This document shows positions 9,801 through 64,000 of a stretch of DNA of 64,000 nt, piece by piece. Under the pieces are notes generated by a model. It was not told the origin of the DNA, made no database searches, and worked only from the letters and a program-made list of their open reading frames with translations. The position numbers were made by a program, and so were the translations under genes. Every line of letters begins with the position of its first letter. Position 1 is the stretch's first letter. The stretch lies in NCBI GenBank assembly GCA_047495785.1, contig JBLDXI010000017.1, positions 1,364,001 through 1,428,000 of the forward strand, given 5' to 3'. The DNA is from Lepidodermella squamata. Taxonomy: Eukaryota > Animalia > Gastrotricha.

Positions 9801-10527
9801 CTCTGCGCATCTTTCTTCTCATGAATTCTCAATGTTTGAGACACCGAAAAATAAAACCTATTGCTATAACTTGCACTCGAATTCCGATCATAAGCGGAGA
9901 ATTTATTAAAAAGTACAATGAATTTTTTAGCTTCGCTCACGGAGTTGCGAACAGGCGTTTATTTTTGCAATTTTCTCTACAATCCAAGGTCCAGTTTCAC
10001 TTCTCATCTTTCGAACATAAGTTGGAACATTGTTCGAGTTCACTATGAAATTTAATTTCAAGGTGTAATAACGGAATGTTTTATAAATAAACTGATTCAA
10101 TCAGGATCCACAGCCTGCATAAGCAATAGCGTCGGTTTTAAGTTTGTTCATTTTTCATCGGAATTTGCGAAATTTGCGAAAATATCGAAAAAATATTCGG
10201 CGCGAAAAATGATTATCTTTTCATTGATCCATTCCTATCGTGAATCTTTCTCATCGTTCAGGAAAATGCCTCGTGACGCTTATTTATCGTCATATCATGC
10301 ATGACACGTTACGCTAACAGCAAACAGCTGCGCCCCTTCTGTTGCTTCATCTGGCTTGTTTGCATGTTTACTAGGCTGGTCGAAGAAGATATCGCAATTT
10401 TCAACCTTAGTCTCGTTTACTATTTTGAACCTTAAACGATATAGCTAATTCCAAACTTTTCAAACCTGATTTAATTTTCCTGAATTTTGCATTAGACAAC
10501 AATTTTTTCACCATTTCATTCGCTATC

Positions 10528-11079: not shown

Positions 11080-12418
11080 TGATGATCTTTTTTCCTGTGA
11101 CCTTTCAAATTTCAGAATTTTCGAAATTTTTGTGATCTGGATTTTTACGATTTTTTCTTCGCCTGCGTCATTGTTTTTACTACCTCATTGATTTATCTTG
11201 AATAAATAATAAAGAAAGGGCGGCCGAAAATGTGTGTTTGATTTTTTAAACACCGAAACAGTCGCCGAAAATGATGGGTAACTTTGGTAATCTTCTTTAA
11301 AGGTTGAAAATCAGATATTGATCGAAAATTCAAAGCCTAGTGATTCCCCATTTTCTTGCAAATTTACGGCACATTTTAGTTCGATGTTTACTCGAATTTT
11401 TCACCTGATACCCTGTTAAATGAGCTCTGCAGATGTGTTAATGGCAGCCGAATTAACACTTCTCTTGAACATCGATTTTTGCTCCATAAGTGCTATATCA
11501 AACAAAAGCTGGTGAAATGGTCAATTTTAAGCGATAAATCCCTTAGTTCTAACGTTCAACCCAGAAAAATTTAATCTCAAAGCCCAAAGGGTCCAAGGTT
11601 ACCTGTCCTTCGAGTTTTTTCGAGTCCCACATGATCTGGGAGGTCTTATGGCTATTATAATTAATCCAAAAGCTTCAGAGTTTGTAGGAATTACTGAATC
11701 GGGAAATCTGCCCTTAAAATCGATTTCCGCTTCTCTGGGTTTTCACGGTAAATAAAACAACAAGAAAAGAACATCGTAGCGATCTCATTTTTTTATTTTT
11801 CTTCCGAATTAGCTCGCGCATTTGCAACTCTCACCTGGACTCACGGTGAGGAAAAACGATAGAAAAAAGAATGAATCATAGCGTTAACATGATAAACTCT
11901 AAACATCTAAAAATGCGATAATACCGATGCACTTGACACGAAAAATGAAATGGGCTTCCATCCATCATCCATCCATCCATCAAACAGAGCAGGCGAAAAA
12001 AGCACGATTTTAACCGCAAAAAAACAAGCGCATCATCCAAAAAATTCAGAATAATAATAATAATATAATAATAAGAAGTATAGCACGCATTACAAAATTT
12101 TCAATACATTTGTGGAGGTATGAGGCCCAATAATATAAGGTTTGATTTTTTGCGTCATAGAATGGCACTTGCGAAATTTCCTCCTCCTCAGGCAAGACCA
12201 TGAAGGATAATATTAATATGATTTTTCAGTTCAAATTATAGTTGACATTATACATGAAAAAAATCACGCGTGTTGGTCCAATTTTTACGCACTATTTTTT
12301 TCAGATTTTTTATTAGAAAAAATTAAAAATCTACTCACTAAAAGAGTGCTTTGCCAGGGTCATCGTTGGGAGAATATACTGTAATTTTTTTTGCAAATAT
12401 AAAAAAATTCATTTCATA

Positions 12419-15151
12419 TTAAATTCTGTCGACATGAACTCCGTTTGTATCGTCGGTCAGTGTTCTAGGCGATCTGCTAGTGTTGGCACTCATTAGGCCG
12501 GAACTGTCGGCGCCCAGGTCTGAAACTAGGACAACGTTGCCTTTCGCCGATCGCGTTGTTATGCTGTTGTTTGTGTTGTTGAAATAGCCCGATTGGCTGC
12601 CGGCTGATTCGCCAAAATGAATCACCTGGTGGTGCCGCCCGCCGCCCGAGCCAGACCGCGACGTCTGGCTCGACTCGAACATGCTTAGCGAGGTCTGCTC
12701 GTAGTAGCGCCGCCGGCGTTCGCTCCAACAGCCGAAGCAAAATCCGATGACGGCACATAACAGCCCGCTAAAATGGAAGAAAAAAATCAAAATTGAAGCA
12801 AAATTGAAATAAGAAGTGCTATAATGAACGAAACGAAATACTGATTCAGGCTGCCAAATTCAGAGCTTGAATTTAAAATTTTAAAATTCGGAAATCCCTT
12901 TTTAATAAAGGTTTCCCCTAATAATTTTTATATTTCGAATTGAGGATCTAAACAACTGAATATTACCAAGTTTAAGTTTAGCCGATTAACCGATAAATTC
13001 CTCAGTTGATTTCATCATAATCGGCAATCCACTGAGGAAGAATTAAACAAAATACCCTTGGATCGATCAAATGACTCGATAATATTGTTGATGTCGGTAA
13101 AATTGTGTAGGTAAAAGAAATAAAATTTCAATGTTTCCGATCCAAGTCAAAGCTCTCCGAAAATATTGATAGGCTAGAAATATTATACCATAAACGGCCA
13201 CTAAAATATTTGTCTCATAAGCAAAACAAGCAAAGGAGATACGAGGGAAAGGTTCAAATTCAAATGCCTAAGGGGCCTAATTGAATATCGTTAGCGACGC
13301 GCCAAAACAACCACTTTACTATTTATAGATTTTATGAGGAAAGTACGTTCGAAATGAGGATAAAATCGGTGCTCAAAAGGCCTAACGTACTTCACCATTA
13401 CGTTAGGCGACTAAAAGTACGATGGAATGACTCATCTAAGTGGTTGTTTTGGCGCGTCGTTAACGATATTACCTATGAATTTGGCCTCAGTCATAATCCT
13501 CAGGCCTAAGGGGCCTAAGGGGAATGCAGTAAAAACTACGGCATTGTTCAACCAGAAATAAATTCCGATTCAATCGGTAAATACCGTTAATTACCGCAAC
13601 AGTTGCCAAAAGATATTTTCGGGTTTTCCCCGGTAAATTAGAATTTTCTTAGATGAAATGTTGGTCAATTGGTCGGAAATGCCATTAATTTGGGGGGAAC
13701 TTGAAAAATGCTTGCACTACAACCTCCTTATGTGACACCCTGTATATTCGTTTTTCTCTTTTTCACCTCTTTTTAACTGATTTTCAGCCAAAAAATGAAG
13801 CCAAAGAGAAATATAGAAAACTATGATAGCTAGTTGATAGATCACGATGGACGACCTGCAATTATCATGCCTGAATAAGGTCTAGTACATCGCTAAGTTT
13901 CAGAAATTATGAACAATTTTCAAGTAAATTCCATTGGAGAAATTTAGACCAAGCCCAGGCGCGCATGCTACAGCGAAACAGTGAACCACGGCCTTTATCA
14001 TCCGACTTTCGCACCAAGTCTTGATTTCCGAAAAATTCATGATGGATCCGGAAACAAATTCTCAGAAATACGAAATTTGTTTGTCTCTTGTCTAAATCTT
14101 TTGGATCCCATATTATACCGATAACAATGAAAAATCGGTGAAAACAATTCAAATTTCTAGGATGGGAAGTTTAAGATCCCGCTACTTACTAATGCAAGCA
14201 ATCAGTTTAAAAGAATTCTGAAAAGTGTAAATAGCCATAAAATTCCTAAAGGCGTTATTTCTAAAAAAATATTTATTATCAACTCTCAAATTATTTAAAC
14301 GCAACTTACAACACGAGCATTCCTGCAATGGCGAGGACGAGGGCGAAATTTTCTAGCTGGCTGGTTTGCCAGTTGAGCGGGTTGTACCTGACGAAAAAGT
14401 CCTGATCTGAATCGTCGATAACCGTCGACTTCTGAATGCCGCCCACGCCGTCGCTGGGCGCCGGCGATTCATACGTTATCAACTGCGACATGGTCGTCGT
14501 TGATCTTAGCACAGCGTTCGATATCGAACTATTCAGCCCGGTGCGAACTAGCGTCGGAAAATGATGCCCGCCGCTCAGTAGCCGATTTGTCGTTTTAGGC
14601 ACCGCAGTCGTAACAGCGGCTTCGAACAACTCCTTAACAAATATAGCAACCGGCTGTGAGTGCGAAGTTGTAGGGGCTAAAGTGGTTGTAGTAAATGATT
14701 TTAAGGTGGCTGTAGTACCATCGCCCGCTGTTGATAAATCGCCGCGATTGGTGCTGTTGCTAGTAGTAGCAGGTAGAAATGTTGAAAAAATGCTCGCTAT
14801 GGTCGATGAAGCGAAACTTTTTAGCAGTACTGAAGTAGAAGAAACCGGCGCCGAAGTGGCGCTAATAGAATTTGCTGTACCCGGCGAAGCGGAGGAGAAT
14901 AAGCCGGCTGAGTAGCTGCTGGCGCTCTGATTGTGTTGGTTATTGTTAATATTAATGGAATTATTGTAGCTAATATCCAGGCTGCTACTACTATCGACCG
15001 GAAAACTGCTGGTGTTTAGCCACTGTGGCCATTCTGTTGTTGTTGTATTGCCTACTAGCATCTGTGAGGAATTAACCAGCGTTGTAAGCATCGCGCTAGT
15101 TATCGACGATGATGATGGTGACGATGATAAATCGGAACTGCTGGAATTCAT
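12419..15151 (-). CDS. Mucin-like Ser/Thr-rich single-pass membrane protein; exons 15151-14310, 12767-12419
   Basis: A phase-2 GT-AG junction rebuilds one TM helix (FALVLAIAGMLVFGLLCAVIGFCFGCW) followed by an RRRR stop-transfer. The ectodomain is S/T-rich with many N-x-S/T sequons. Confidence 0.75.
13284..13470. mobile_element. MITE-like element in the intron of the mucin-like gene
   Basis: 33-bp inverted repeats AATATCGTTAGCGACGCGCCAAAACAACCACTT (13284-13316) and its reverse complement (13438-13470), one mismatch; internal palindrome GCCTAACGTA..TACGTTAGGC; possible TA target duplication. Confidence 0.8.
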
Positions 15152-40392: not shown

Positions 40393-43300
40393 TCAGACAG
40401 TAGTTTGAATGGCTGTGCTAACTATTTTCTCCAGACGTTTGAAGAAAATTAAGGTATTTTTTACAATTCTATTGTCAGCACTAAGCAGCCTTGCAGGGTC
40501 GTGGCCAGCAACAGATAAACAGTCGTAAGAAATATGGTAGGCTAACTGGCTCAGAGGAGTAACGTTACCACAGAACATACATGTAACATCATCAATTCTG
40601 AAAATAAAATGTTCGATACGGCGAAAGACGGTGTTCGTGACGACTCGCAGAGCAGTACTTCTAAGGTCAGGTGGATAATTTTCGAATATCTTACTAATGC
40701 CAAAGTAACCGTCCCTGGCTAATAGGTAGCTGGCATTATATTTATTATGAAATTTGACAGATAGTTCAGAAACATAGCAGTCTTTGACTAGGTTGAAAAA
40801 TTGCTCCATGACTGCCGGGTCACGCATAAACCAGAAGTCGGGAGGCAGATTGTAGGATAATAGAAATTTACGAATTGCGTGGATGGGATTTAAGACACCC
40901 ATCTTCGGACGAGAATGGAAGTAAAAAGAAAAAGCATCATTCACTAAGGGGTTGGCACATTTCGTCAGCTCACATGTAAACTTGACTGCATTGAGTTTCG
41001 CCTTTAGGCTAGGGGGAATAAGTCCCATAACAAAACCAGTTGATAAACTAGACGCATTGTACGGAATGTCGCGCGCTCTTTTATAATACTTATAACAGAC
41101 GCTGTCCAATTTAGCAACACGGCTAGGGGCGAAGAGGCCCCAGAGTTCGGAGCCTGCAAGCATCGCCGCTTCAATTTTGCTACAAAATAGTGTATCCAAG
41201 TTATTGCGTTCTATCATACTCAATTTGATCCTATGAGAGGAAAGAGCGTTGTAACAGCTATTGCCACGTGTAAGCGCATTTTCAATAGCTTCAAACCAGC
41301 TCAAGTCGCTGGATATCGGTACGCCTAGGTAGAAATCAGATTTTACAACTTTGAGAGGTACGCCGTTCATATTAAAGGAGTAACGGTCAGGTGAAACAGG
41401 AGCTTGGGAAAAAATGATAACTTTCGTTTTACCGGGGTTAGGGCTGAGCCCTTCTCTAGTAGAATACGTCGACATAGCATCAATCTGTATTTGCAAATCC
41501 ACCGCGTTAGTTGCAGTGGGTGTGGAGTCGTCCGCATATAATACGCAAAGTACCTTGGTAGAAAGTAACTTGGGAATGTCTGATAGATTTTTGGCATTCT
41601 CAGCCAGATGAAGAGGCAAATCGGCGGTATACAGATTGTACATTAGGGGACCTAAGACGTCACCCTGTCTAACACCGCGTTCAATGGCGATGTCTGCAAT
41701 AGACAGTTTGCTGCCAACTCGCACTTTGGCTTTAGCATCGGAATAGAGAGAGTTCAATCTCTTGGCAAAGGAAGATGAGATACCTAATCGCTGGCATTTC
41801 CATATAAGACGGTTGTGAGGAACGCAGTCGAAAGCTTTAGTAAAGTCGATTAAACATATAAAGAGCATTCTACCGCGAACGTGGATTTGGTACGTCGCCA
41901 ACGACTGAAGGACGAAAGCCGCGTGTAAGCGCGATAATCCTTTTTCGAAACCAAACTGCTCTTCAGGTATGATCGAGTGAATTCTACACCACTTTTCCAG
42001 TCTCAATTTCAGTATAGTAGAATAAGTTTTGTATATTACGGATAAAAGAGATAATGGCCGGTAGTTGTCCGGCTTAGAGGAGTCACCTTTTTTGAACAAG
42101 GTGCAAAACAGAGACAAATTTAGTCCCGATGGCAGGGTGTAGCTAAGGAAACACGGTTCAAAAATTTTAAAGAGCGTCTTGCTGAAAAAAGAAACATTCA
42201 GGTCACTGTGTTGCATGAATTCAGCTGTAATACCATCCGGGCCGGGCGCCTTACCTGCTTTTTGAAGTTCTATGGCCATTTTGACTTCGTCAATAGTCAA
42301 AGGAGCATCCAGTATTGGGTCTGATGTTGTGAGTTCGAGTGGGGGTGAGACAACATTCCGATTTCGGTAGAGCTCCCCGAAAAATTCGACCCATTCGTGC
42401 ATCTGCGGTTGATTTTGGGGAGAAAGAGGCGCTGTTTTGAAAGCCACCCAGAGAGAACGTTTAGTTTTATCGCTGTTGATTACTGATATTTCCTTGTTAC
42501 GATTTAATATGCGGCGCATTTTGCGCGAGGCGTTAGCTTGTTTTCTGTATAAACAAAAATTCACATGATCCCCGACATCCGGGCGGGTCGAGTCGGCCTC
42601 GATAATTTTAGTATCATAAGGGATGTGGCCTCTAGTGGCAAAATTACTGATAAGATCTAGCGTAGAGCGCAAAGCATCGTTAGGCATTTGAGGTAAGTTA
42701 TCCGCAAATGAGTCGATGTCAGTATTTAAAAGGTGATTATGGAACGCACCTGAATCGAAGTGCACCTTAGTATAAGACGTGGAAGCGCTAGTCTGCTTAA
42801 ATGTGATCTCATCTGATTTCAAATAGTATGCTATGGGAAAGTGGTCAGAGTTAATGATATCCTGGCGAACAGAAAAAGTTGAGAATTTGCTCGCCAGCAA
42901 ATCTGGAGGAAGGAGACAGTAATCGATCACGGATTGACCGTTGTGACCAACAAAGGTGAATTCGCCTTGACGGTCGCCACTGCAGCGACCATTCGCGACA
43001 TAACAGGACATATGATTACACATAGAGAAAAAATGTTTGACCACGCTAGAGGTGGATACACTAGTGTCCTTGGATCTGCGAGGCGCTAGTGGGTAGAAAG
43101 CTTCGTCATCAGTTAAGGTTTCCGACTGATTGCCTATTCTTATGTTGAAGTCTCCGACTAACAAAGGAACGTCATAAGTCGATGAATAAGTGTCATGTAA
43201 ACTAGTTATTTTTTCTAAAACTTGAATTTGACTGGTAGCCGAGTATGGTCGATTATAGACGATAAAGAGTCCCATGATGGTATTCACGCCACGTAACAAT

Positions 43301-43596
43301 TTTGCCTGGACTCTAACTAGAATTATCGATTCATTAGAGAAAAGTAAGGATGGTTTCAAGTCTTTACGAATAGCGACGGTCATGCCGCCACTAATACTTT
43401 TGGTATTGATGTCACGAACAGGAGGGGCGGAGAATATTGCGTAACCAGATATAGACTTTGGTTCCGTACCGAAGGTTTCGACCAAGGCAAAGATTAAGAA
43501 TTGTTTCAGGGTTTTCATGTGGTTTTCAGCTTTAAGACCCGAATGAATGTTCCAAAACAAAATAGAAAAGTTCCAGTCACTAGATTTCAGCAAAAC
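40393..43596 (-). CDS. LINE ORF2: AP endonuclease + reverse transcriptase + C-terminal Cys/His motif
   Basis: APE motifs FWNIH, LVET, VYNRP, GDFN, IDY, SDHFPI; RT motifs KAPGPDG, NYRPLSLL, QFGF, IDFTKAFD, GVRQGDVLGP, YADD, YLG; CMFC..HISYDC. Confidence 0.95.
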   Translation of the reverse strand, partial: VLLKSSDWNFSILFWNIHSGLKAENHMKTLKQFLIFALVETFGTEPKSISGYAIFSAPPVRDINTKSISGGMTVAIRKDLKPSLLFSNESIILVRVQAKLLRGVNTIMGLFIVYNRPYSATSQIQVLEKITSLHDTYSSTYDVPLLVGDFNIRIGNQSETLTDDEAFYPLAPRRSKDTSVSTSSVVKHFFSMCNHMSCYVANGRCSGDRQGEFTFVGHNGQSVIDYCLLPPDLLASKFSTFSVRQDIINSDHFPIAYYLKSDEITFKQTSASTSYTKVHFDSGAFHNHLLNTDIDSFADNLPQMPNDALRSTLDLISNFATRGHIPYDTKIIEADSTRPDVGDHVNFCLYRKQANASRKMRRILNRNKEISVINSDKTKRSLWVAFKTAPLSPQNQPQMHEWVEFFGELYRNRNVVSPPLELTTSDPILDAPLTIDEVKMAIELQKAGKAPGPDGITAEFMQHSDLNVSFFSKTLFKIFEPCFLSYTLPSGLNLSLFCTLFKKGDSSKPDNYRPLSLLSVIYKTYSTILKLRLEKWCRIHSIIPEEQFGFEKGLSRLHAAFVLQSLATYQIHVRGRMLFICLIDFTKAFDCVPHNRLIWKCQRLGISSSFAKRLNSLYSDAKAKVRVGSKLSIADIAIERGVRQGDVLGPLMYNLYTADLPLHLAENAKNLSDIPKLLSTKVLCVLYADDSTPTATNAVDLQIQIDAMSTYSTREGLSPNPGKTKVIIFSQAPVSPDRYSFNMNGVPLKVVKSDFYLGVPISSDLSWFEAIENALTRGNSCYNALSSHRIKLSMIERNNLDTLFCSKIEAAMLAGSELWGLFAPSRVAKLDSVCYKYYKRARDIPYNASSLSTGFVMGLIPPSLKAKLNAVKFTCELTKCANPLVNDAFSFYFHSRPKMGVLNPIHAIRKFLLSYNLPPDFWFMRDPAVMEQFFNLVKDCYVSELSVKFHNKYNASYLLARDGYFGISKIFENYPPDLRSTALRVVTNTVFRRIEHFIFRIDDVTCMFCGNVTPLSQLAYHISYDCLSVAGHDPARLLSADNRIVKNTLIFFKRLEKIVSTAIQTTV

Positions 43597-44625
43597 CTAT
43601 TGCGACATTTCATTACCTGGTGCCCGCCATGGGGGAACATGGTTCTCGGCCGGGCCCGTAGCAGGCACGATCAATCCTGTAACAAAGCAATATTGATAGT
43701 TACCAAGATTGGTGAACAGCCGGTTTGCCACAATGTCCGCGTACGTAAGTGCTGCATTGTGTTGCTCCATCAGAGATTTCTTCTTGGCTGCGAGGGCAGC
43801 ACGAGTGGATCTCTCCATTGGTCCTTTGGAAGGGTAGACTTTGAGCCCACCCAATGCTAGCTTGGGGAAGGATGAGCGATCGAGTATTTTGCGCCGATTG
43901 TCGTCAGACAACTTGGTGTAACACACAACTGTAGCTGTTGGGCGAGTTTGGCCTTGTCGCGGGGGGAGATGAATAACTTTTTCCACGACGTCCGATGTTA
44001 GAGCGTTTTTGATATCTTCGTCAATCGCCAGGGCTTTCACCTGATCGATAAAGTCCGTAGGGGAGGTAGCGCCCAATCCAGACACAAATAGGCTGTCAAC
44101 TTGTTGGTGATCTTCTTTTTCGCGTGTGATGGCCAGGCCGCAGAGTCTGTTGACAGCAGTTTTGAGCATGGCATTCTCTTGTGAGACCAGCTGTAACTCA
44201 TTATTCATGTTTGCGAATTGCTTCGCATTCTCCGTCTTGAGCTCATTATAGCGGGCCTCAGATTGCTCCAGCTTGGCGTTCAATTTTTCAAATTCCGCGA
44301 GGAAAAGTTTAACAAGGGTTGACAACGAGCTACTGAGGTTGGCTTGTAATTCTACAGCCCACTGTGGCGCATCAGAAGAGAGCGGTTTTTTCGTGTTTTT
44401 GCCACCGCCGCCACGATAGTCTACATCGTTGGGGTTAACGGGGCTCAGCTCATCGATTGAGCGGGTGTTTTTATTGCGCATTAATGAATCCATAAATCGA
44501 GGCGTTGACGCCAATAGATACGGGTCTACGTTAGCATTGACTAAAGTTACTGGCAAGTTCTGCCTACTGCCATTAAGCAGGTTTTGAATAAAGCTTACAT
44601 CAGCTAAATTCTTCGCTTCTCCCAT
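43597..44625 (-). CDS. LINE ORF1 (coiled-coil, probable nucleic-acid chaperone)
   Basis: 342-aa ORF directly upstream of ORF2 with a heptad coiled coil (LNAKLEQSEARYNELKTENAK..LVSQENAMLK) and a downstream LFVSGL segment. Confidence 0.8.
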   Translation of the reverse strand: MGEAKNLADVSFIQNLLNGSRQNLPVTLVNANVDPYLLASTPRFMDSLMRNKNTRSIDELSPVNPNDVDYRGGGGKNTKKPLSSDAPQWAVELQANLSSSLSTLVKLFLAEFEKLNAKLEQSEARYNELKTENAKQFANMNNELQLVSQENAMLKTAVNRLCGLAITREKEDHQQVDSLFVSGLGATSPTDFIDQVKALAIDEDIKNALTSDVVEKVIHLPPRQGQTRPTATVVCYTKLSDDNRRKILDRSSFPKLALGGLKVYPSKGPMERSTRAALAAKKKSLMEQHNAALTYADIVANRLFTNLGNYQYCFVTGLIVPATGPAENHVPPWRAPGNEMSQ

Positions 44626-50044: not shown

Positions 50045-53000
50045 ATGGCGGAAGTTGCAGCCAATGCGCAGCCCCAAAAGGCGTTTGATCCTGCTGGTAA
50101 GTCGTCAGCAGTATTTAAGTTACCGATAGCTTTATTCCTTTCTTTTTCAGATTTCCTCCCGATCGAAATTCCTCCTGCACCTGTCGGTTTAGGTGGAAAA
50201 GAAGGGCAGGGCCCTCGTCTAGTCATCAAATCATTGATTTTGGAAAACTTCAAGTCCTACGCCGGTAAGCACGAGATCGGCCCTTTCCACAAAAAGTTCT
50301 CCACCGTTGTCGGCCCGAATGGAAGTGGCAAATCGAACATTATCGATGCGCTACTATTCGTCTTCGGATACCGTGCAGCTCGTATGCGCCAGAAAAAAAT
50401 CAATAAGCTCATCCACAGCTCGGAGAATTGCCAAGACCTCGACCAAGCCTCTGTTACTGTCCGTTTCGAAAAAATCGTCGACACGGGCCCGGGCGGTAAT
50501 GACTTTACAGTTGTTCAGGGCTCGGCTTTCGACATTCGCCGCACTGTATACGCCGATGGCTCGTCAACTTACCATCTCGATGAAAAGAAAGCAACTCATC
50601 GCGATATCTGCGACATGTTACGCTCGTATGGCATCGATTTAGACCACAATCGCTTCCTCATTCTTCAGGGCGAGGTCGAGCAGATCGCGATGATGAAGCC
50701 GAAAGCGCCTACTGAAAACGACGATGGAATGCTGGAATTTCTCGAAGATATCATCGGAACCTCGCGGTTTAAATCAGTTCTAGAGACGCTGGAAGAACGA
50801 ATTCGTGTCCTCAATCACTTCCGCTCGGAAAAATTGTACCGCGTCAAGTTGATTGAACAGGAGAAGAATTCGTTAGCAGCTGTTAAAGATGAAGCTTTAG
50901 AGTGGATTGAGAAAAGCAACACTCTGGTTTTACGCCGCAACGCTCACCTCCAGAAAGTCATCCAACGCTACACGCATGAAGAAAACCAGCTTAACCAGCA
51001 GAAAGAAACGATTGTGAACTCGAAGCAAGCTCGTGAAACCGAGCTGAAAAAGGTGAAAACTGAAAAGAAGGAAAAAGATCGTCTGTTGGCCGAGTTCGTT
51101 AGTCGTGAGGAAACTTTACGAAAAGCTCTTGAAGCTCGTAAGAAGCAATTTGCTGATTGCGAGGCTCGCGACGCTAAATTGCAGCAAGACATCAAACACG
51201 CAAGTTCAAAAATCTTGAAGCTTGAAAAGCAACTCGCGTCTGAGGAGAAAAATCTCGCCGATCTCAACAAAGCCGCTGCCTCGAAATCAGCGAGCGATCC
51301 TAAAGATGCTGAGGCCGCGCTGAAGGAAGAAATCTCGAAGATTCAACAGAAAATTAAAGCTCTCGACGAGGAGAAGAACGAATTGGAGGAAAAAATCTCG
51401 AAGGCCCGCGACGCTTTGAAGCCTGAAACCGAAGCCCTACGAGCTGAGAAGAAGAAAAAAGACGGCGAGTTGGCTAAAGTTCGTAAATTGGCCGACGAAG
51501 CGAAAGCTCAGGTGAAACTGGCGCAGAATGAGGTTGATACAGTTAAATCAGCTCAATCTCGCGAGTCGGAGAAACTGAGCAAAATCGCCGGGCAACTTGA
51601 ATCGGCGAAAAATCGCCACGAAGAACTGAAGCGTGACGTTGCGTCGGCGACAGCTCGCGGTAAAGAAATAACGAAGGAACACGAAAATTTGACGCAAGAG
51701 ATTGCACAAGCTGCGGAAAAAGCGTCAAAACTAGTAGATTCAATCAACCAAGACCGGCGAAAATTGGCCGAATGTCGAGATGCGCAACAAGCAGCTGGTA
51801 CTCGCAATCGCGTTCTCGGTTTCTTACTCGAGCAAAAGCAGAAGGGTGTCGTGCCGGGTGTTATCGGGCGACTGGGTGATTTAGGCTGGATTGATCCGAA
51901 ATACGACATTGCCGTTTCAACCGCTTGCAGCCCTCTCGACTCAATCGTCGTAGATACAGTTGAAACCGCAACGGCTTGCATTGATTTGATCCGGAAAAAC
52001 AACATTGGTTTCGGTAATTTCCTCGCCCTGGATAAGGTGACTAACAAGGCTGGTCAAGCGATGCGCCACAAATTCCCTGGCGCGCCTGAGAAAGTCCCTC
52101 GGCTGTTCGATTTGATCAAAGTTAACGATGAATCTCTCCTCCCGGTTTTCTACCACGGTCTTCGCGATACGTTGGTTGCGGATAATATCGAACAGGCCAC
52201 CCGAGTTGCGTACGGCAGTACGCGTTACCGTGTTGTCACCCTGAATGGGCAGTTGATCGAAACCTCCGGAACAATGAGCGGTGGCGGTAATCGGCCATCG
52301 CGAGGCCGGATGGCGCTGTCAGAGGCTAACACGGTTTCGACTAATAAACGGAAATCAGTTGGCGGGGATGATGTCGACATTCCGAAAATCGAACAGGCGA
52401 TTCAAGCCGCTCAGAACGAGGTGGGCACTTTAAATCGGCGCCGTCTGGAAGGCACCGAGCGAATTCATACGTTGGAGGTTGAGATCAAGGAATGCATGAA
52501 GAAGGTCGAGAAGGCCAAGTCTGAACTCGCGTCTTTGGAGAAATCCATCCCGCAACTCGAGCAGAACGCCCAGGAACAGGAGAAGACTGTCTCAGCCGCT
52601 GCCCCGGATTCGAAACGAGTCGCTGAGCTCGAGGCGGTTGTTGCGAAGAAGCAAAAAGAGGCTGATAAAGCCCTGGATGTTGTGAAAAAGGCTCAGGAGG
52701 AACTGGCCGAGGTTGAAGAACGTCTCGGGGCGATTAGTGGCGCTAAGTTGAAGCCAATGGTCGATAGAATGGAGCATTGCCAGTCGGAGATCGATCGTTT
52801 GAAGAATGAAATCACGACGAAACGATCAGCGGCGAAACAAGCGGAGAAAAATTTGCAAAGAACTACTGAACGAGTGGCGGAATTGCGCGAGCAGTTGGAC
52901 GAAGCTCGGGAGTCGAAGGCGAAATTGCTGGAAGATTGCAAGGCGCTGGAGACTGAAGCTCAAGAGGCGATTAATGCCCACGACGAGGTGAAGAAGGATT

Positions 53001-54583
53001 TGAAGAAAATCGACGCTGATAAGGGGGACGTGTCTGATGCGTTCAAAAAATTGGCGGCTGATGAGACGTCGGCACAAAAGGACATTTTAGGCTGGCAACA
53101 GCAGTTGGAAGAGCTTGAGGAGCGAATCAAGGCGAATCGATCTGGGTTGAAGCGATTCCGGCGTGATTTGGCTGGTTTGGCGTTGCAACCGGCCGATGGT
53201 GGTACGGGAGGCGATGAGGAAAAAGAAGCCGTAGATGAACCTAAATTGCCGACTTTGAGTGAAGATCAGCTCGAGGAGATCGATGAAGAGGCTATTTCGG
53301 TCGAAATCGCGAGGTTGGAAGAAGAAATTGGCCAGAAACAGCCGAATATCGAAGCTATTCAAGAATACCGTAGAAAAGTGAGTTTATTCAATATATTTTC
53401 TTAGTGAAACCACCGAATCCAAAATACAGGCTAAAAATTGCTGAAGCACGCGACTGGGCTGATTTTCTATCATCTTGGCATGTTATTTATTGAAAATTGG
53501 AATAACCGGGAAAATGAGGCTCGGCCTAAGCTAAGATGCTGGAAAATCTATCGAATCGCTTGCTTTTAGTATAGAAAATAGCGTTATTGTGGATTCGGCT
53601 TTTCCACTAAGTTCCATTAGAAAATTTGATTTTAAAATAAAATATAAAATATAAAAAAATATGTAATATTTAAAATAATTTTTACAGGAAAAACTGTATT
53701 TGCAACGGGTGGCTGAACTCGAGGAGTTGACCGAGTGCCGTGAGAAGCAGCGCCAACAGCTTGAAACCATCCGCCGTACCCGCTTGCAAGAGTTCCAAAG
53801 CGGTTTCGGTATAATTACTGCCCACGTTCGAGAAATCTATCACATGATCACCGGTGGTGGTGATGCCGAACTTGAATCTGTCGATCAGATGGACCCGTTC
53901 AGCGACGGCATCTCTTTCCAGTAAGATTTTCAGTTAATTCCAGAATTTAAGATCTTTCTTGTTATTTTGACTAAAAATAACGTTTTAACAACAACACTAC
54001 AAGCTACAAGCTAGAAATGATAAAATTTGAATTTTATTGCAATTATTTTTATTATTTTGAAATTTTAAAATAATATTTTATAAAAATTAAAAAAATCAAA
54101 ATTGTTTTTTAAATATTTTAATTATTTTCATACTCAATTTTACGATCATTTACTAATCGAATTTTCTTTTTCAGCGTCCGCCCTCCAAATAAATCGTGGA
54201 AAAGCATCACAAATTTGTCTGGCGGTGAGAAGACATTAAGCTCCCTGGCCCTCATTTTCGCGCTGCACATTTTCCGCCCGGCGCCGTTCTACATAATGGA
54301 CGAAATCGACGCGGCCCTCGATGCTCGCAACGTTGGCATCATCGCCATCTACCTGACTGAGCGGACGAGCAACGCGCAGTTCATCGTTATCTCGCTGCGT
54401 AATGAAATGTTCGAACTCGCCGACCGTATGATCGGCATCTACAAGACGCACAACTGTTCGAAATTCGTCGTTTTCGACCCGTCCGCCATGGCAGCGGCCG
54501 CCGGCGCCCTGCCCAGCCAAATGCAGCAGCAAGCCGCGATCACCGACGGCCCTGTCGACGATTCGCAGCGCACTCATCGCTGA
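50045..54583 (+). CDS. SMC4: Condensin subunit SMC4; exons 50045-50096, 50151-53377, 53688-53920, 54175-54583
   Basis: NFKSYAG, Walker A GPNGSGKS, IDLDHNRFLILQGEVEQIAMMKPK, hinge GRLGDLG..YDIAVSTAC, signature LSGGEKTLSSLAL, Walker B YIMDEIDAALD, AQFIVISLRNEMFE. Confidence 0.97.
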
Positions 54584-54913: not shown

Positions 54914-57900
54914 CTATGAAATGGCCAAAAATTTGTCGGCAAGAACTTCGCCGATATCCGGACGCTCGTCTGGGTGATTCGTCAGGAGATTCTCAACAAA
55001 ATGACGCAGCGAATCGCCATAAGGCATTTTCGACGGAAATTGGACCCTAATTAAAAAAATAAATAAAAATTCCTCCTTAAAAAAATAAAATTCTCACTTT
55101 GTGCGTTTCGGCTTGAATAAATTTTCATCGCCCTCATCAAACTGTTTTAAAATATTTTGAAAAGAAATCGAAAATCAAAAATTTCCTAACCGGTGGTCTA
55201 GAGAATGCAAGCTGGTAGGTCAAAGCGCCTAGAGCCCAAATATCGGCTTTGCGCGAATAGGGTTGGTGATCGATAATTTCGGGCGCAATGTGAGCGCCCT
55301 TTCGGCGCAAGGCGACAACTTGGCGGTACTTGTCGATCTTGTGGATCGTCCCAATCTGGCCCAGCTTAACGTGCTTGTTGTTGTCGACAACTAGAATGTT
55401 CTTGGCTTTGATGTTGCGGTGCACGATGCCGTTTTCGTGAAGAAATTTCACCGCCGAAGATAGCTGCCATATCCAAGAACGAATCTGGGGAAAAATAAAA
55501 ATTTGAATTTCTTTCGAAAAAATTTAGGTCATACAGTTGCTTCAGGTAGGTTCAATCTCTCCTTTCGATTTTTCGAAATAAGCTTCGACAAATCGCCACC
55601 AGAACAAAACTCCATCTCGATAATAAGCTTATCATGTTCTAAATCGAAAATCAATTCATAAAACCAGATTGAAAATATTGGGATTTTTTACCTTCGAAAA
55701 CTTTGAAAAACTGAACAACATGAGCGTGGCTGTATTTCGCGTTAACGAGAGATGTTGCTTCGTGAATGACACTTCGCCGCTCGACTGAGTTCATCCGAGC
55801 GAGGGAGACCTCCTTCAAAACAACTTGAGTTTTGTCGATAGGTCTGCGGGCAAGGAGAGCGCGGCTGAAATAGCCCTGGCTGATAATCCGAATTCCTTCG
55901 TATTGATCACTAAGACGAACAAAGATAAATGGAAAATTTCTAAAAATCAAGATTAATTACCATGACACGTCCAGAGCACTCGTTGATGGCTTCCGAAATT
56001 CGATCAGCGGCAACGATTCAGACAATTGATTATCGCAATTTTGCAGAACCGAACAAGAGATAGAAGCCGACTTTTGAGACGCCACCTTAAAACAATAAGT
56101 AATTATCGTAAAATTCACAATTTCTCCATTCTTACTCGATAGGCTTTAGCCGCGACATCGGAAAGATGGCGTTTGCTCACATTTCCAACAGCGTTCCAAT
56201 CAACAACATCAATGCCGTCGTACTTTGACCCAGTTGAAACAGCCATGAAGACTTTGCTACCTTGCGCCAAAGGAATTCGAGCAAGCTAAAAAAAAATCCA
56301 TCAATATCTCAATAATTCTCTAAATTTCATATGCAAACCTGTTCAATGTACTGGAAAACTTGTTGCGGAATTTCCTCATGAAGGATCGACAGAACGTGAA
56401 GTCCAAGCGCGAAATAGCCATTGATCAACCGCTGTCGAGATTCAGAAATCTCCGAACCAGGCGTGTTGACAACAATTCGTTCCAGCTGAATGATAACACG
56501 TTGGAACATATCAATAGGCTTGCACTCTTCCAGAACGAGATGATGGTCATCGGACTTGAATGCGAAAATCAAATTGACACAGCTTTTATAGATGTGAAAA
56601 GCTGAAACATTAAAAATTAATTCATATTTTTTTTATGAATTAAATTAGCATACTATCAGCGCAAAAAGGGTCCGGATTCAGGAGATGAATATCAATGGCG
56701 TGTAGGCACAGTCGGAAACAGGTGTTGTACTGGCGTAATTTTCCGAAATGAACCGCCACCTCACGCACGCTGTTGTACGTAAACGGGTGCTCCAGGCCAA
56801 GAATTCGCTCGCAAATCTAAAAAAAAATTGAGCGCCAACTTTTAGTAAACAAATAGCAATAATTGCGTCATCAAGTTCACGTGACAGTCTGAGTAATTTT
56901 TCCAGGTCATTCAGGGCAATAAAATGCCTGGTTTTAATGAAATTTATTAAACCAATTATTTACCAGAAGTGCAGTGAAATGAACTTTAGTAGTGTCGCTG
57001 CGAATGGCGCTCAGCTCTTTCGAGTTGCGATATTCAGTCAAGTTGTTGTAGACAGTTCGCGGCTCTACATCGTTCAACTTTTTGTTGTAACGCGATAGAA
57101 GCGACTGTCGCAAAGCCACCGCTGAATACCAGCAATCGAGCCCGTTCTTGACATTCGACGGCGTTGATCGGGACAGCGTTCGAGGTCGCATTTCAATCAC
57201 TGAGCCCGAGTTCTTTTTATCCTTATCCCGGCCGGAGCAGATTTTTTTCGCACCCAGCAACTCAAGAGCATCGGCTGCTTTGTCCTTCGACAGGCCCTTC
57301 GACAACAATTTAACGGCCTCGTCATGTTCGTACATGGCTGCGACTAGTACCGGGGTGATACCGGCATTGTTCGGTTTTTGAGTCGCGCCATAGGCAAGCA
57401 GTAGCTTCAAAATTTTCGTATTTCCATTTTCGGCTGCATCGTGAAGACAGGTATGGCCTGAGCAAAAAAATTGATAAAAAATTAAGTAAAACAAAAATAA
57501 AAATGTCCAACCATCCAAGCTCGCCTGATCGACCTTGGCCCTTCTCTCAAGAAGGTACTCGACGATTTCATAGTGGCCACGAGCACAAGCGACCATAAGC
57601 GGGGTGCTGCGGCAGACATTTCCAAGTTCCAGATCGGCGCCTTTTTCCACCAAAAATTTGAGAAGTTCCACGTGGCCCCCGTGGCAACAAGCTCGTAAGG
57701 GTGAAGACAGGGTCTTCTTGGTTCGGATATTGACATTAGCGCCGAATCTGATGAGAAATTTAGCTAGGGGGATGTTGTTCTTCTGACAAGCTAGCCACAA
57801 AGGCGGCACTCCTTCGATGAGATGATCGTTGATTTTCACTAACAAATTACAAATTACAAATTTTGCGAAATTTTCTAAAATTTGCTCACCATCCCCGAGT

Positions 57901-58193
57901 TGATCGTAATCAGCTCCGCATTGAAGAATTAAAAATTCGACGATATCAAGATATCCCTTATCACAGGCAGTTAAAAGCAGCGTTGTTTTAACGCCTAGAA
58001 AAATGCGAAAAATCAGCACATTTTTCGGAAAATTTTCGAAATTTTTACCATCCGCATTAACTCTTGTCGTGTTGACAAGGAGGCTTCGTTTGAGAAGTTC
58101 GCGTAACGAGCTGGTATTTTCGAAGAGATCTCGGACCTGCGTGAGTTGGTTGTTGCCAACCCATTCGAATAGTATTTCCAGGAAGGTTGACAT
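54914..58193 (-). CDS. Fem-1-like ankyrin/TPR protein fused to a NEK-like pseudokinase (854 aa); exons 58193-58049, 57994-57890, 57838-57512, 57457-56964, 56816-56654, 56601-56339, 56285-56136, 56085-55961, 55909-55692, 55638-55535, 55484-55191, 55141-55098, 55046-54914
   Basis: Fem-1 hallmarks IEGVPPLWLAC, NVNIRTKKTLSSPLRACC, KADALELLGA, ALLICERILGLEHP; kinase-fold motifs VVLKEV, EMEFCSGGDL, HRNIKAKN, APE, KADIWALG, PDERP. Thirteen exons total 2565 nt with no stop. Confidence 0.8.
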
Positions 58194-60026
58194 TAATTAG
58201 TAATTCAGCTTGTTTCTTCGCTGTGGGCAATCAATGCAATGATTTTTCGAAGCGTTGACTTTTTCCGTATTTTCATAAACCGTTTGCCGATAAATTTATC
58301 GAAATGCCGGTGTGAAGCCAGAATAGCAGGAGTTTCAGTTAATTTCTCCACGAGTGATTGTTAAACTCGAAAAAGTGATGCTAAAAAAAACAAAAGTTAT
58401 GTCCAAAATCAGCTAACATAGAAGTTGAACTTTGTATCATATAGTTGAGCGAGCCAAAAAGCTTAGAGAGAGAGGAATAGAGAGACCGAAGAGCACGTGC
58501 TTGTACAGCTGCGGATGAAAAGAGATCAAGTGGTGAAAAAAGCATCACGGCGGGCAGAGAAGAACGCTACGTGAGCTCATCTTGATGCACGAAATCTGTT
58601 GCCGGCCGCCCGCTCGAAGTAATAAAATTACAGTTATTTTTCTCGCCCCTTTTGAACATTGTTATTAACCAAGGCAACAATAATTATTTTAATGACCAGG
58701 TAGTTGAATGCTCTGTCTTGTATATAAATAAAAGGCTTTCCACTACCAGCTTTCAACTTGACCTAGTTCAAGTGGTAAAATTATTATACCATACTGTCGG
58801 CGAGACTAGCCGATTTTATTGCCATTGAACAACGCACTCGATGACCGACTGTCTGCTGTCGAAGAATAAGCCAAGTCTCGACGACTTGGTGGCGCCACTT
58901 TCGGGCCAGACTATAATGAGTGCATTTGTCGCGGTCATTCGAGTACTTCCATCTTTAGCATAAAAAATTAAACTAGCTGTACAAACATCTGAGACAAAGA
59001 AATGAATGAAATCGTCCAGGGTTCACGTGTTCCTGACTGATTTCAATGAATTAATGAAATAATAAAATAATAATAATTAATTAATTAAAAAATAAAAACG
59101 TCAAGTATATTTTCCATTTCAATCTGGACCGGAGCCAATTTCATGATAGCAGAATGCGCATGACAGCTGATGCGCTTTTCTTATATCGCATCGCGTTCGA
59201 ACGCGTCTAAAATTCAATAATTAAGAAATCATGAAAAAATGTATGAGATGAATGCAGGCTATGAATTTGAGGCTATAATAATATGGGATTACTCTAGGGC
59301 TAGCCGATCCCATTCCCACATGCGCACAATTAGTGGCCAATTTTTGGGGCGTTAAAGAGGCATAAAGCACAAAAAAATTAAATAAAAATTCCACCTTAAA
59401 AAATTGCACTCACAAATTCTGCTGTGCATGTGTGGGAATAAAAGTGCTTGGCGTCAGTGAAATAAAATAACAATATAAAGTATAAAGTAATAATAATAAG
59501 GAAAGGTGAAACAAAAGTACCATGAGATCTTAGATGAATTGTATCAAGGCGGATGCCTTCTTTTCTGATCGTAAATTGCTCTCTACACAGTCGGTGCACG
59601 TTAGCGAGAGCGCAACATTTCACGCCTTGATTTTTTCAGCGCGCGTGTATCGCGTGGAAAAAATAGCAGCTTCCTGTTTGTCTTCTCCTGGTTTTTTCCT
59701 AGTCAATAAAGAATCTACGACCTTTGCACACATGATTCATGACACGCACAAAAGTCGCAATTCTTTTCAGTTGATGAGCAGCACACGCCTCTAAATCTCG
59801 AATCGAGTTCACGGATATGTGTACGGTGTGCGGGTTACATTAAACCGAAAGAAACCTTAACTTTTGGCATGAACATGTCGAAGTTATTATTAGATTGTGG
59901 TGCCTGATTGTGGCATTTCTTGGACCAGTCTTGATATTATCAACTTTTATTTAAAAAAAATAGGGCGAAAATTGCGAAATTGAAGTAAATCAGCTCACCG
60001 CATGCCGAGATGAATCACCGATAATT

Positions 60027-61470
60027 CTATTTTATATTATTGAAATCACGTTCACAGGGTTTTCCGTTAACATAGACAGCAAGGACCTTGGTTTGGTCAT
60101 CAACAGCGATCAGGCTACCAGGATTAGTTGAGCTTTTAATGTCTATAATCGATAGAGAACCGGGTGAGATCAGCTTGCCGCAATTCAGTAAATGACCGGT
60201 TTCACTTGAGATGATGAAGTAGTTGCCGAATTTCGATACCATCATCAATTGATTTTCCTTGAAATTCACACTGTAAAAATGCTGGAAAAATGTTATCGGT
60301 AAATTTTGATTTGAACTTTGAGGAAGTATTTTACCGAAATAAAAATTGGAAAATCATACGCCTCCAGCTTAACATGAGTGACGTAGCTTTCTTGAAAACC
60401 TCCATCAGCCAGCTGCAACTTGCGTATCAATTCATTGGTAGCTATTGCCACTGAGTTCGGTGTTAAAAAGGTAACGGCATTACAATTCAAGTCGAAAACA
60501 TGCCGCCCATCAGCACTAAAAAATAGCGACAGCCCAACAGTTGGGTTAAACTTGTCAATTCCCTTCAACACGTGCCAACTGCATTTTTTCGCGATCAACG
60601 AATCGGAAAGATAATCTTTAGCCCGGAAATAAGAAGGCTCATCCTGAGTGCGAACCAAAATTTCACGCTTGCGAGCGATAATTGTGCCAAATTTGTATGT
60701 TAGGATCACGTGATATGCAGCACGGTGAGAGACAACGGCTATTTTTTTCGGTGAGAGCCATTTCAGCACAACTATTCTATCGGTGTTATTGAAAGAAATA
60801 CGATGAAATTGAGAATGCGTGTCAAGCGCCCACAATTGGATGACACAGGCCTCAAGATCGTCGTGTCTAACAAGTGCCAAAGTGTTTCCTAAATAAAATT
60901 AAGAATTTTTTTTTTGAATTTTCGAATTATTTAAAGGAAGGGGTACTATAATAAGACAGGATAAATAAGACCAGGACGAGTAATATAATTTTATAGCGGG
61001 ACAAATAAGACCAACCCCGACCCTAACCCTAACCATAATTCCAATAATATCCATTATTTTAAAGTTACCCCTTCAAAAATCATTCGGAATTGGCTCAAAT
61101 CGCTCACCGTCTGGACTGACCGCTGCCCTGTCAGCGCAAAAAACTGGGTGCCGTCGGATGCGTTTGAAACAGTGGCTGAAATCGCATAGCGCAACATCAC
61201 TGATTGCAACATGGCTATGCTGCTTGTGACAATTTTCATCCAATTCATTATGCTCCAAATCATCGGCGGAGGCTATCGTTTGGCAAAATAACCGAACGTC
61301 CTTTCGGCAAAGGTGACCCGCATTCGCGATCGAAACCGCTCGAATTTCATTGCTCTCAAGTCCAAGATTCGACAACTGAAAAAAACGCATCGTCGATAAA
61401 TAAATGATTAAGGTGGAGTAACTTTTACCGCGCACAATTCCTCCACTTCAACACAATCAATAGCTGTCAT
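60027..61470 (-). CDS. Stand-alone clathrin heavy-chain N-terminal propeller-like protein A; exons 61470-61429, 61375-61108, 60888-60335, 60281-60027
   Basis: Collinear with the clathrin terminal domain: LSNLGL, CADRAAVSPDGNTLAL, VLKWLSPKKIAVVSHRAAYH, DFPIFI, VSKFGNYF; stop at the end of the propeller. Confidence 0.7.
60939..61045. repeat. Intronic repeat with telomere-like CCCTAA units
   Basis: Three AATAAGAC direct repeats followed by CCCTAACCCTAACCATAA (61021-61038). Confidence 0.5.
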
Positions 61471-61738
61471 AGGATGATTGAAAATGAATTTTTCAAGTTT
61501 AAACAGCTTTTTATTCTGCGTGTGTCGTATCACTGATCACTGGATGGGTTTTTTTCGCAATATTTTCTTTATTATGTAAGTACCCATATTATTTTAAGGG
61601 TGCTAAATTATTGTAAATAAAGAATTTTTATTTTCTATTGGGTACCTATATATCGATTCAAATAGTGGAATAACGGATGTACATGTCCGTCAGATATCAA
61701 AATATAATGCAATTTTTATGATGAAACCGGTTTATTTT

Positions 61739-63125
61739 TCAACCGAATCGTACATGAGGCACGTTTTTCCGTTCGAGCCATTTGAATTTGGTCGCATCGT
61801 TCGCCCCTAAGCTGCCATTGCGAGGCCGCATACTATTGTTGGGGTTGTGAGTGATGACCTTGCCACTGGAAATCACCTTAATTCTACCAGCCATTTGATG
61901 GCTATTAGGCGCCGCACTTTTAGTTCGTTCCGATGTGTTTTCAACGCCAAGTGAAAATATTCTCCCATCGGAGTCGATGCAGAGAAGGTGGCTGTTTACA
62001 AAGTTGTTGTGAACCCCCAGCAAAGGTCCTTTAAGATCAATCCGGCCCTGTTGAACTAGGGTCACTGAATCTGTTGCGTATAGATAGAAATAGCCGAATT
62101 TTGTGAGAACGCAGAACCAAGACACCTCTTCGAAAAATTGATACTGTGTGCTGAACTAATTAGAAAAACATTTATTAGAAAAATGAAAAATAACAACGGA
62201 GCAATACCTGAATAGCGACCGGATAATCTTTCGCTTGAGAGATGCTATCAAACGCGATACGATTATGGGATGTCTCTTCAACCAGCATTCGAGGGCCTCC
62301 AAGACGGATCGTGCTTATTCGACCGAGACCAGAACGATTCCTAGCAGCAATCGCCAAGTATTTATCCAATTTCAGAGTGCTCGGCCGGAAAAAGGCAGCA
62401 ACTTGACCCTGCATGGTCACAACATGTTGGCTAAATTGGAACAATTGAATATGGCCTAGCTTATGGTGTCCGAAATTGTCAGGATTAGGTTCGATGCCAA
62501 TTAGAGCTCTCCATTGTCTTTTACTCGAATCAATCAAATAATCCACGATTTCAACATGATCGATATCGAAATTCGGATCATCAACCGGTCGCTGAAGTTC
62601 TTCCTTCTGAGAGCTGTAATATTTCGACTTCAACATATCAGGGTCTATCGAAATGTGGAAAACAGATCGTTTTGTGACTACTGCCAGAGTTTTCGGCAGC
62701 CATTTCACGAAAACAACGCTATCTCGCCCGAACTCAATGCTTCGAACTTTGCTATCCTCCATTTTTTCAGTCAGCCATACTTGGACATTGTTCGAATTGT
62801 TGCTTGTTTTCTCGATTAGGGCAATGTATTGACCATCTGGACTGACCGTGGCGAGGTCGGCGCAGATTGGCCCGCGGCGTTTCATCTGCTTGAAAGATCG
62901 ATCGATATCGTCGCATAGGGCCAAGTCGCCTAACAGAACTTGGGAACTTCCAACTAAGGTCTCAGAGGCTGCTTGAATGCAAAGATGGGTGTTTTCATAG
63001 CCACGATCGATGTCGGAAGGGACTGATAGCAAAGACGTAGCTCTGATATCTTTCACGTCGATGCCGTAGTCGGACAAAGAAGGCAGTTCGTAAGCTTCGA
63101 AAGGATTCGAAGAAAGAGAAAACAT
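61739..63125 (-). CDS. Stand-alone clathrin heavy-chain N-terminal propeller-like protein B; exons 63125-62208, 62155-61739 (start may lie further upstream)
   Basis: LSDYGID, RRGPICADLATVSPDGQYIAL, FVKWLPKTLAVVTKRSVFH, IVDY..QWRALIGI, GHIQLF, MQGQVAAF, DYPVAIQ, LTKFGYFYLY, GRIFSLGVE follow clathrin residues ~1-330; then a short polar tail and stop. Confidence 0.8.
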
Positions 63126-64000
63126 TTTCGAGTTCTGCTTCGCTGAATGATGTACAGCCCCTATAAATACTGCTCTCAAGTCCTGAAGGTTCAAAAATAT
63201 GTTTTGTGTTTACGAAGTTGCTTGAAATCACTAGGCTTTTTCGCAAACCGTGGTAAAAATCGATATTGTTTTATTCATCTGAGGGTGTAATTGACCACCT
63301 TTTCAATTCTTCATCAATTTTTCATGTAATAATGGTTGTTTTGTTGTTTTGAATGTTTCGGAACGCCTCTGAACTGAAAAGAGCCACACATGATGTGGAC
63401 AATTCTTGAAGGCTTGATTGCAGGATGCGAATATTTGCTGCTTTATGCATTCATCTCATTCTCCATTCATATGCATTTTTGTTCGCGTCTAGACGGAAAA
63501 TGTTGTGAACAAATGTTCGCAATGTCCAGAAAACAGGAAGGCATATTCTTCCACATCGCCATTCCATAAAAACTTCGCTGACGGTAGCTTGCTTGGGGTC
63601 TAAAAATTTGTGCCACTATAAAACTGAAGTTTCAGCCATAGAGATCAGATTAACGTGATTTTTAACATCTTGATGGAATTCAGCTTAAGCTGGCCTCATC
63701 GTTTTTCCAAGAAAAACAGCGGAAATTCTTCTGAGTGGGGCAGTCAACCTTGATCAAACCTGGTTCCCAGGAGGATTCGTAACCGCGGATAAAAATTTAA
63801 ACGAAGACAAGGCTGACCTCGACATTTAAAAATATTAATTTTTTAAGTTCGATACCAATAGCTTAATATCATTTCCTTCCCTAATCCTAAGTCCTAAGTC
63901 TCAAGTCCTACTAGTCGTAGCAGGGGATAAAAAATTAAAACTAGGTCAAGGTCGACCTGGACATTTTTTAAGGCGGATACCACTGGGGTCTTTTCTAACA

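Follow-up and report, generated by a model that had tools for sequence, protein, structure and literature searches.

Few eukaryotic proteins are as strongly conserved as the clathrin heavy chain, whose terminal domain ordinarily occurs nowhere but at the end of a triskelion leg. In a 64,000-nucleotide stretch of the genome of the gastrotrich Lepidodermella squamata (contig JBLDXI010000017.1, positions 1,364,001 to 1,428,000; the window, to which all positions below refer), two genes appear to encode this terminal beta-propeller and no other part of the heavy chain. They lie in tandem, head to tail on the minus strand, between 60027 and 63125, with gene A upstream of gene B. Both have diverged far from clathrin and from each other, gene A is transcribed and spliced, and both are under strong purifying selection. 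Probably, though with room for doubt, they are functional tandem-duplicated genes that go back to the 5' portion of a clathrin heavy-chain gene and whose products have been repurposed as stand-alone peptide-binding propellers with altered specificity.

Homology to the clathrin terminal domain

Protein searches and folding with AlphaFold2 (AF2) were done exon by exon. Both genes run colinear with the clathrin heavy-chain terminal domain over residues ~5-335. When exon 1 of gene A is compared with the PDB by phmmer, the ten best matches are all clathrin (E 6e-5 to 3e-4), with query residues 73-305 falling on clathrin residues 52-264; exon 2 continues onto clathrin residues 265-331 in a colinear but weak match (E 0.4-1.2). 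A profile of A and B set by hhalign against 25 canonical terminal domains reaches a probability of 99% and E 5.9e-18 over 256 columns and ends exactly at DFPVAMQ, and the C-terminal exons (exon 2 of A with exon 3 of B) take up three columns later, on canonical columns 314-377 (E 1.1e-5). Gene B also matches on its own: the exon at 60335-60888 is similar to canonical terminal domains with E 1.8e-5, and the last exon covers canonical columns 315-381 with E 4e-4. The blade 1 exon of gene B is significant only against gene A (tblastn E 6e-7).

Predicted structures point the same way. The AF2 model of gene A exon 1 has a mean predicted local distance difference test score (pLDDT) of 70.6, and in a Foldseek search of the PDB clathrin terminal domains take the first 38 places (E 1e-11 to 5e-9), the next fold class beginning only at E 4e-5. 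For the 60335-60888 exon of gene B (pLDDT 71.6) the clathrin terminal domain again leads the Foldseek matches (E 6e-5), with a poorer separation than in A. By language-model features the nearest clusters carry Clathrin_propel, and the ESM Atlas, searched by features and shape, yields canonical clathrin fragments only, followed by generic propellers. On these alignments and models, A and B are clathrin terminal-domain homologues. The first-pass annotation had already described a colinear resemblance to the terminal domain that then stops, a description borne out by phmmer, hhalign and Foldseek over residues ~5-335; the profile and structure comparisons that it proposed as checks both came out as clathrin.

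The degree of divergence is considerable. Identity to canonical terminal domains is only 22-29%, while A and B share 27-29% identity in local tblastn alignments (E 2e-8 and 6e-7) and 22% over 281 aligned columns. At the nucleotide level the sole repeat between them is a 33-nt stretch, 79% identical (61106-61138 versus 62832-62864), that encodes a CAD.A.VSPDG blade motif; in B an intron follows directly after it, in A there is none. An exhaustive HMMER search of 1.84 billion representative proteins returned four matches, of which three are canonical clathrin N-terminal pieces (E 1e-8, 1.6e-4 and 4.4e-4), and among these proteins no close kin of A or B was found beyond such canonical fragments. 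The fourth match, a bacterial SPDGKYLAV-repeat protein, was rejected as spurious, as it shares only the SPDG-type blade motif. A word-index protein search with gene A exon 1 gave no match, and a profile search combining A, B and canonical sequences gave 575 matches, the best 120 of which all look like canonical fragments. A Pfam scan of the five exon products returned chance-level matches only. The strong divergence of the genes from each other and from clathrin, which had been noted at the outset, is thus supported by the identities and the Pfam result, and the suggestion that these propellers are restricted to one lineage agrees with the lack of close relatives in the HMMER search.

Gene structure, transcription and selection

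The coding sequence of each gene is predicted to hold the terminal propeller only. The frame of B meets its stop just past blade 7, and that of A past an unmatched tail (Table 1). When eight clathrin N-terminal fragments of 500-610 residues, which span the propeller, the linker and the first leg repeat, were used as tblastn queries, they matched the window through their first ~335 residues only and at genes A and B only; nothing resembling a linker or leg turned up in the 64-kb window, including the 60 kb downstream of the genes. The exon products have no match to the Pfam families Clathrin_H_link, Clathrin-link or Clathrin. As judged from gene structure, the C-terminal trimerisation and light-chain-binding region is lacking, since coding ends at 444 residues in A and at 363-372 in B. 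The original claim that linker, legs and trimerisation domain are missing is therefore upheld by the stops, by the tblastn search of the window and by the RNA contig of gene A, and no splicing onto downstream leg exons was seen.

The limits first given for the two models hold exactly on the minus strand, from the ATG of gene A at 63125 to the last base of the stop codon of gene B at 60027. Gene A (63125-61739, 444 aa) has two exons, and gene B, which begins 270-350 bp 3' of the stop of A with a blade 1 of its own, runs from 61390 to 60027 (363 aa) or from 61470 to 60027 (372 aa). Splice sites are GT..AG throughout. Both features that the first-pass annotation singled out as common to the pair are present: an intron at the identical aligned position and in phase 0, after DYPVAIQ in A and DFPIFIS in B, and the segment GDLALCD in A, SDVALCD in B. 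Its open spliced frames also stand for both genes, except that the N-terminus of gene B probably lies one 14-codon exon further upstream. The start at 61470 is the more likely of the two because the ATG at 61390 leaves B without the N-terminal strand that is found in A and in all clathrins. The additional exon would supply a hydrophobic-x-hydrophobic strand followed by E..EL..LS..G, as in residues 9-21 of A and 7-19 of canonical clathrin, and the intron that it implies matches the other short introns (52 and 53 nt) in length. This exon at 61470-61429 is a proposal from sequence alone and lies outside RNA coverage. AATAAA signals can be read 3' of the gene A stop at 61736-61731 and again at 61632-61627, and 3' of gene B at 59951-59946.

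Table 1. Parts of genes A and B, in window coordinates and in order of transcription
Feature	Position	Strand	Description
Gene A exon 1	62208..63125	-	306 codons; blades 1-5 and start of blade 6 of the clathrin-terminal-domain-like propeller
Gene A intron	62156..62207	-	52 nt, GT..AG, phase 0, directly after DYPVAIQ
Gene A exon 2	61739..62155	-	138 codons and stop (61741-61739); blades 6-7, then a ~65-residue unmatched tail
Gene A 3' untranslated region	61653..61738	-	limit set by the reach of RNA contigs
Gene B proposed extra first exon	61429..61470	-	14 codons, MTAIDCVEVEELCA, ATG at 61470
Gene B proposed first intron	61376..61428	-	53 nt, GTAAAA...TTTTTTTCAG; joins in frame at 61375
Gene B blade 1 exon	61108..61375	-	extends to 61390 if that ATG is used; ends in phase 1 after ...VSPD
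Gene B intron	60889..61107	-	219 nt, GTGAGC...TTATTTAG; no counterpart in gene A
Gene B exon for blades 2-5 and start of blade 6	60335..60888	-	ends at DFPIFIS
Gene B intron	60282..60334	-	53 nt, GT..AG, phase 0; aligned position as for the gene A intron
Gene B last exon	60027..60281	-	84 codons and stop (60029-60027); blades 6-7, ~16 residues past the last strand

Two sequencing runs were read, one of RNA type (X1) and one of DNA with two haplotypes (X2). X1 has no depth across intergenic stretches, and in an X1 contig of 831 nt and depth 39 position 62208 is followed immediately by 62155, with exactly the 52 nt missing whose plus-strand ends are CT..AC; on both counts the run behaves as RNA. 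The DNA contig of X2 retains this intron. Contig sequence from X1 covers 62934-62208 of gene A exon 1, and another X1 contig runs unbroken from 61981 to 61653 across the stop of A, with 86 nt of 3' sequence and no further splice. Removal of the intron together with read-through of the stop shows that gene A is transcribed, spliced as modelled and not spliced past its stop, so that the RNA data which the first-pass annotation had called for at the 3' ends bear out the modelled stop of this gene. For gene B the depth in X1 is sparse (0.3-5.9) and confined to exons, with signal at 61070-61303; its transcription is likely and weakly shown. Joints on the apparent opposite strand over gene B in X1 were discarded as assembly artefacts, the contigs having a depth of 2.6-7 and most of them linking places ~105 bases apart.

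Coding differences between the X2 haplotypes, and between X1 and the window, were classed on the gene models with exons concatenated for codon positions, and compared with a binomial expectation of ~22% synonymous sites. Among the listed differences, gene A has 14 synonymous and no nonsynonymous changes (binomial P 8e-10; ratio of nonsynonymous to synonymous polymorphism, pN/pS, 0), and gene B has 20 synonymous and five nonsynonymous (P 1e-9; pN/pS 0.07), of which 16 and three, respectively, fall in the 60335-60888 exon. Both are constrained genes and not pseudogenes.

Adaptor sites and competing explanations

The terminal domain of clathrin has four peptide-binding sites, whose residues include Q89, F91, K96 and K98 of the clathrin box, Q152 and I154 of the W box, Q192 of the arrestin box, and F9 and E11 of the Royle box (PMC5182127, PMC7041688). 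A and B were aligned exon by exon to 30 canonical domains, and the numbering was checked against the residues in these two papers. In the clathrin box, Q89, which is present in 30 of 30 canonical sequences, is kept in both genes (Q115 in A, Q112 in B), F91 has become tryptophan in both (W117 and W114), and I80 is isoleucine in A and leucine in B. K96 and K98, each found in 29 of the 30, are H and Q in B and, depending on the alignment, D or M and K or D in A. In the W box, Q152 (30/30) is replaced by E in A and S in B, and I154 by V in A, with I retained in B. In the arrestin box, Q192 (29/30) gives way to F in B and in A aligns with a gap or with V; W164 is kept in both. In the Royle box of A, F9 is replaced by alanine and E11 is kept. 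The conservation map of the clathrin-box groove that had been suggested earlier thus shows Q89 kept, F91W in both genes and K96/K98 mostly lost.

Over the whole domain, columns that are at least 90% conserved in the canonical set are kept at 41 of 83 positions in A and 31 of 81 in B. Thirty such columns are changed in both genes, seven of them to the identical residue, F91W included; at W111 (V in A, L in B) and W130 (I in A, V in B) the replacements are similar. The full conserved set of adaptor residues of the four sites is not kept in A or B, and the clathrin box is, on this alignment, the only canonical site with its core kept in both. The segment LLGDL in gene A (residues 64-68, 62932-62946) matches the arrestin-box consensus [LI][LI]GxL; it was rejected as a motif, as it lies inside a predicted blade-1 strand and the match is probably a coincidence.

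If the genes have indeed been repurposed, each product would be one seven-bladed terminal-domain propeller without linker, legs, light-chain-binding or trimerisation part. Products without legs would form no triskelia or lattices, and hence would be soluble monomeric peptide-binding propellers. Their probable binding surface is the partly kept clathrin-box groove, which lies between blades 1 and 2, and they would most likely bind a short linear motif with a specificity unlike that of clathrin, given the replacements in the K96/K98 rim and at the key positions of the W and arrestin boxes. The changes common to both genes at F91W, W111, W130 and Q152, all of them positions that hardly differ among canonical clathrins, along with the common intron position, suggest a single diverged and truncated ancestor; one event of truncation and divergence may have been followed by an old tandem duplication that gave rise to A and B.

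The first-pass annotation had proposed that free propellers of this kind might titrate adaptors or have been repurposed. Propeller-only genes are indeed what is seen, and of the two fates repurposing seems to fit better, titration being weakened by the residue map. As natural competitive inhibitors, non-polymerising propellers would draw adaptors (adaptor protein (AP) complexes and epsin/amphiphysin-type proteins) away from clathrin and damp coated-pit formation. This would accord with the retention in both genes of Q89, which is mutated in every 'site 1' knockout, with a position 91 that is still aromatic and with positions 80 and 170 that are still hydrophobic, and binding of peptides from adaptors and spindle proteins has been seen in vitro with isolated terminal domains (PMC5182127, PMC7041688). 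However, B lacks both lysines of the clathrin box and A at least one of them, Q152 and Q192 are replaced in both genes and F9 in A, the canonically conserved columns survive only in part, and a divergence of A and B down to 22% identity is unexpected if both recognise the same conserved adaptor motifs. With three of four sites having lost residues invariant in real clathrins, and with A and B so far apart, titration of all adaptors becomes less likely, and competitive inhibition is an explanation that we regard as unlikely. Endogenous soluble clathrin feet could also serve as regulators or decoys, tuning the engagement of clathrin with adaptors or soaking up clathrin-box-mimicking peptides of parasites such as a putative polinton-like virus nearby, a rather improbable proposal under which nature would have its own protein equivalent of clathrin terminal-domain inhibitors.

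Other explanations deny the pair an independent cellular role. A and B might be cargo of, or tied to, a putative polinton-like virus element that adjoins them, a captured host domain that would disturb host trafficking; binding of viral peptides to the clathrin terminal domain is on record (PMC5182127). Only proximity connects the two, the start of the putative element (an unchecked label) being placed at 63769, 644 bp 5' of gene A, and the element itself lying beyond the window. Both genes fall outside its boundary, a search of 58000-64000 for flanking inverted repeats, which would hint at a mobile element, found none, and the X2 depth is that of an ordinary two-allele chromosomal locus, which makes a viral connection very unlikely. 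It is more improbable still that A and B are the beginnings of longer genes whose remaining exons, coding for legs or something else, lie elsewhere and are added by splicing or trans-splicing. While the 3' end of gene B is without RNA support, the RNA contig of gene A crosses the in-frame stop into 86 nt with polyadenylation signals, gene B begins shortly past that stop with its own N-terminal blade, and the 60 kb downstream hold no leg or linker similarity. Finally, extreme divergence, the lack of a Pfam match and the low expression of gene B are what might be expected of decaying partial duplicates of the clathrin heavy chain, with frames open by chance. Yet the open frames extend over 444 and 363-372 codons, distributed among two to four exons whose GT..AG sites are intact, and 34 of the 39 listed coding differences are synonymous. 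Pseudogenes had been expected to combine a lack of expression with neutral substitution, whereas gene A is expressed and spliced and the polymorphism is strongly non-neutral; the probability that we leave to decay is close to negligible.

Several points weigh against the favoured reading of A and B as repurposed propellers. The AF2 models are of single exons, blade 1 of gene A is of low confidence (pLDDT 45-59 over residues 1-80), and the models are not independent of the sequence evidence, as their input alignments are dominated by canonical clathrin. The Pfam family PF01394 (Clathrin_propel) does not match the five exon products even at E up to 1, a miss that, to judge by the alignments, measures the divergence of A and B; their homology to clathrin emerges only when profiles or whole domains are compared. 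Transcription of gene B is read from sparse contigs of low depth (0.3-5.9), and its ends are provisional. The K96 and K98 columns are ambiguous in A, where phmmer and MAFFT alignments disagree, and the synonymous and nonsynonymous counts are incomplete, with 15 further sequence differences outside the listed set. The proposed mechanism itself is drawn from residue conservation in alignments at 22-29% identity, some of whose columns are ambiguous.

Surroundings of the locus and known counterparts

X2 depth over the locus is about double the depth of either of the two divergent haplotype contigs (about 50 and 67). The haplotypes differ by a 163-bp insertion or deletion inside the 219-nt intron of gene B, where an X2 contig skips 60898-61060. 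This stretch holds a short CCCTAA/CCTAA-type run at 61018-61040, and may for that reason be a small insertion. Directly after gene B (59900-60009) there is a structural difference between the haplotypes: an X2 contig leaves the window sequence just left of 60009, 18 bp past the stop of B, and the depth falls to one haplotype.

Further downstream of gene B lie an SMC4 (condensin) gene, with a long single-exon stretch at 50045-53404 on the plus strand and its best named relatives in molluscs and annelids (36-40% identity), and an ankyrin (Fem-1-like) and kinase gene at 54914-58193 on the minus strand. A metagenome contig (L001), the only related contig available for a comparison of synteny, has the same neighbours in the same arrangement, SMC4 (5571-8810; protein 56% identical) and then a minus-strand counterpart of the ankyrin and kinase gene (9998-12519), split there by the gene caller into Pkinase and Ank products. 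No orthologues of the propellers were found on it by tblastn, the contig ending ~640 bp past the ankyrin gene, before the propeller position. At the far end of the window, 63769-64000 carries repeated GGTCGACC-type palindromes, for example at 63941-63960. Elsewhere, two long adjacent open reading frames of 342 and 1066 aa occupy 40393-44625 on the minus strand; the second has a reverse-transcriptase-like YADD motif, by which the pair looks like an intact retrotransposon without long terminal repeats (non-LTR).

Known systems offer partial parallels. With the clathrin terminal domain itself (PDB 1BPO, 1C9I, 1UTC, 5M5R), A and B share the predicted seven-bladed propeller, colinear over residues ~5-335, with Q89 kept, and several motifs: the KW(I/L) and (Y/F)H blade motifs, W164, D(F/Y)PVA(M/I)Q and the TK(Y/F)GY strands. 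They differ from it in having no following linker, legs or trimerisation domain, in their identity of 22-29%, in replacements at key positions of the W and arrestin boxes in both genes and of the Royle box in A, in insertions of ~10-20 residues in blades 1 and 3-4, and in being missed by the Clathrin_propel model. Vertebrate CHC22 (CLTCL1) is likewise a duplicated clathrin heavy-chain sequence kept under selection with diverged partner specificity, but it retains the whole architecture of ~1640 residues and forms triskelia, whereas A and B keep the first fifth and cannot form them. Databases also hold short 'clathrin heavy chain' entries (170-600 aa, from plants, nematodes and flies) with only Clathrin_propel, with or without a linker. 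Judged by their very high profile scores and their source names (partial, isoform, fragment), these look near-canonical, being fragments, partial models or predicted isoforms, in contrast to the complete, diverged and constrained A and B. Literature searches for natural clathrin paralogues made of the terminal domain only found nothing relevant. A further parallel is offered by recombinant baits, glutathione S-transferase (GST) fusions of clathrin heavy-chain (CHC) residues 1-330 or 1-364, which are monomeric and non-assembling and in which the domain folds and binds peptides alone (PMC5182127, PMC7041688). Those are laboratory constructs of canonical sequence, while A and B are naturally encoded and have changed binding-site residues.

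Taken together, a diverged yet maintained stand-alone form would mean that evolution can put the clathrin propeller to use as a recognition module in its own right. Genes A and B may also be viewed as a natural experiment on which of the four peptide-binding sites is indispensable, one in which only the core of the clathrin box appears to survive. Should their products have kept the ability to bind adaptor motifs, they would rank as the first protein antagonists of clathrin recruitment of endogenous origin; if not, they would point to a new class of ligand for the terminal-domain fold.

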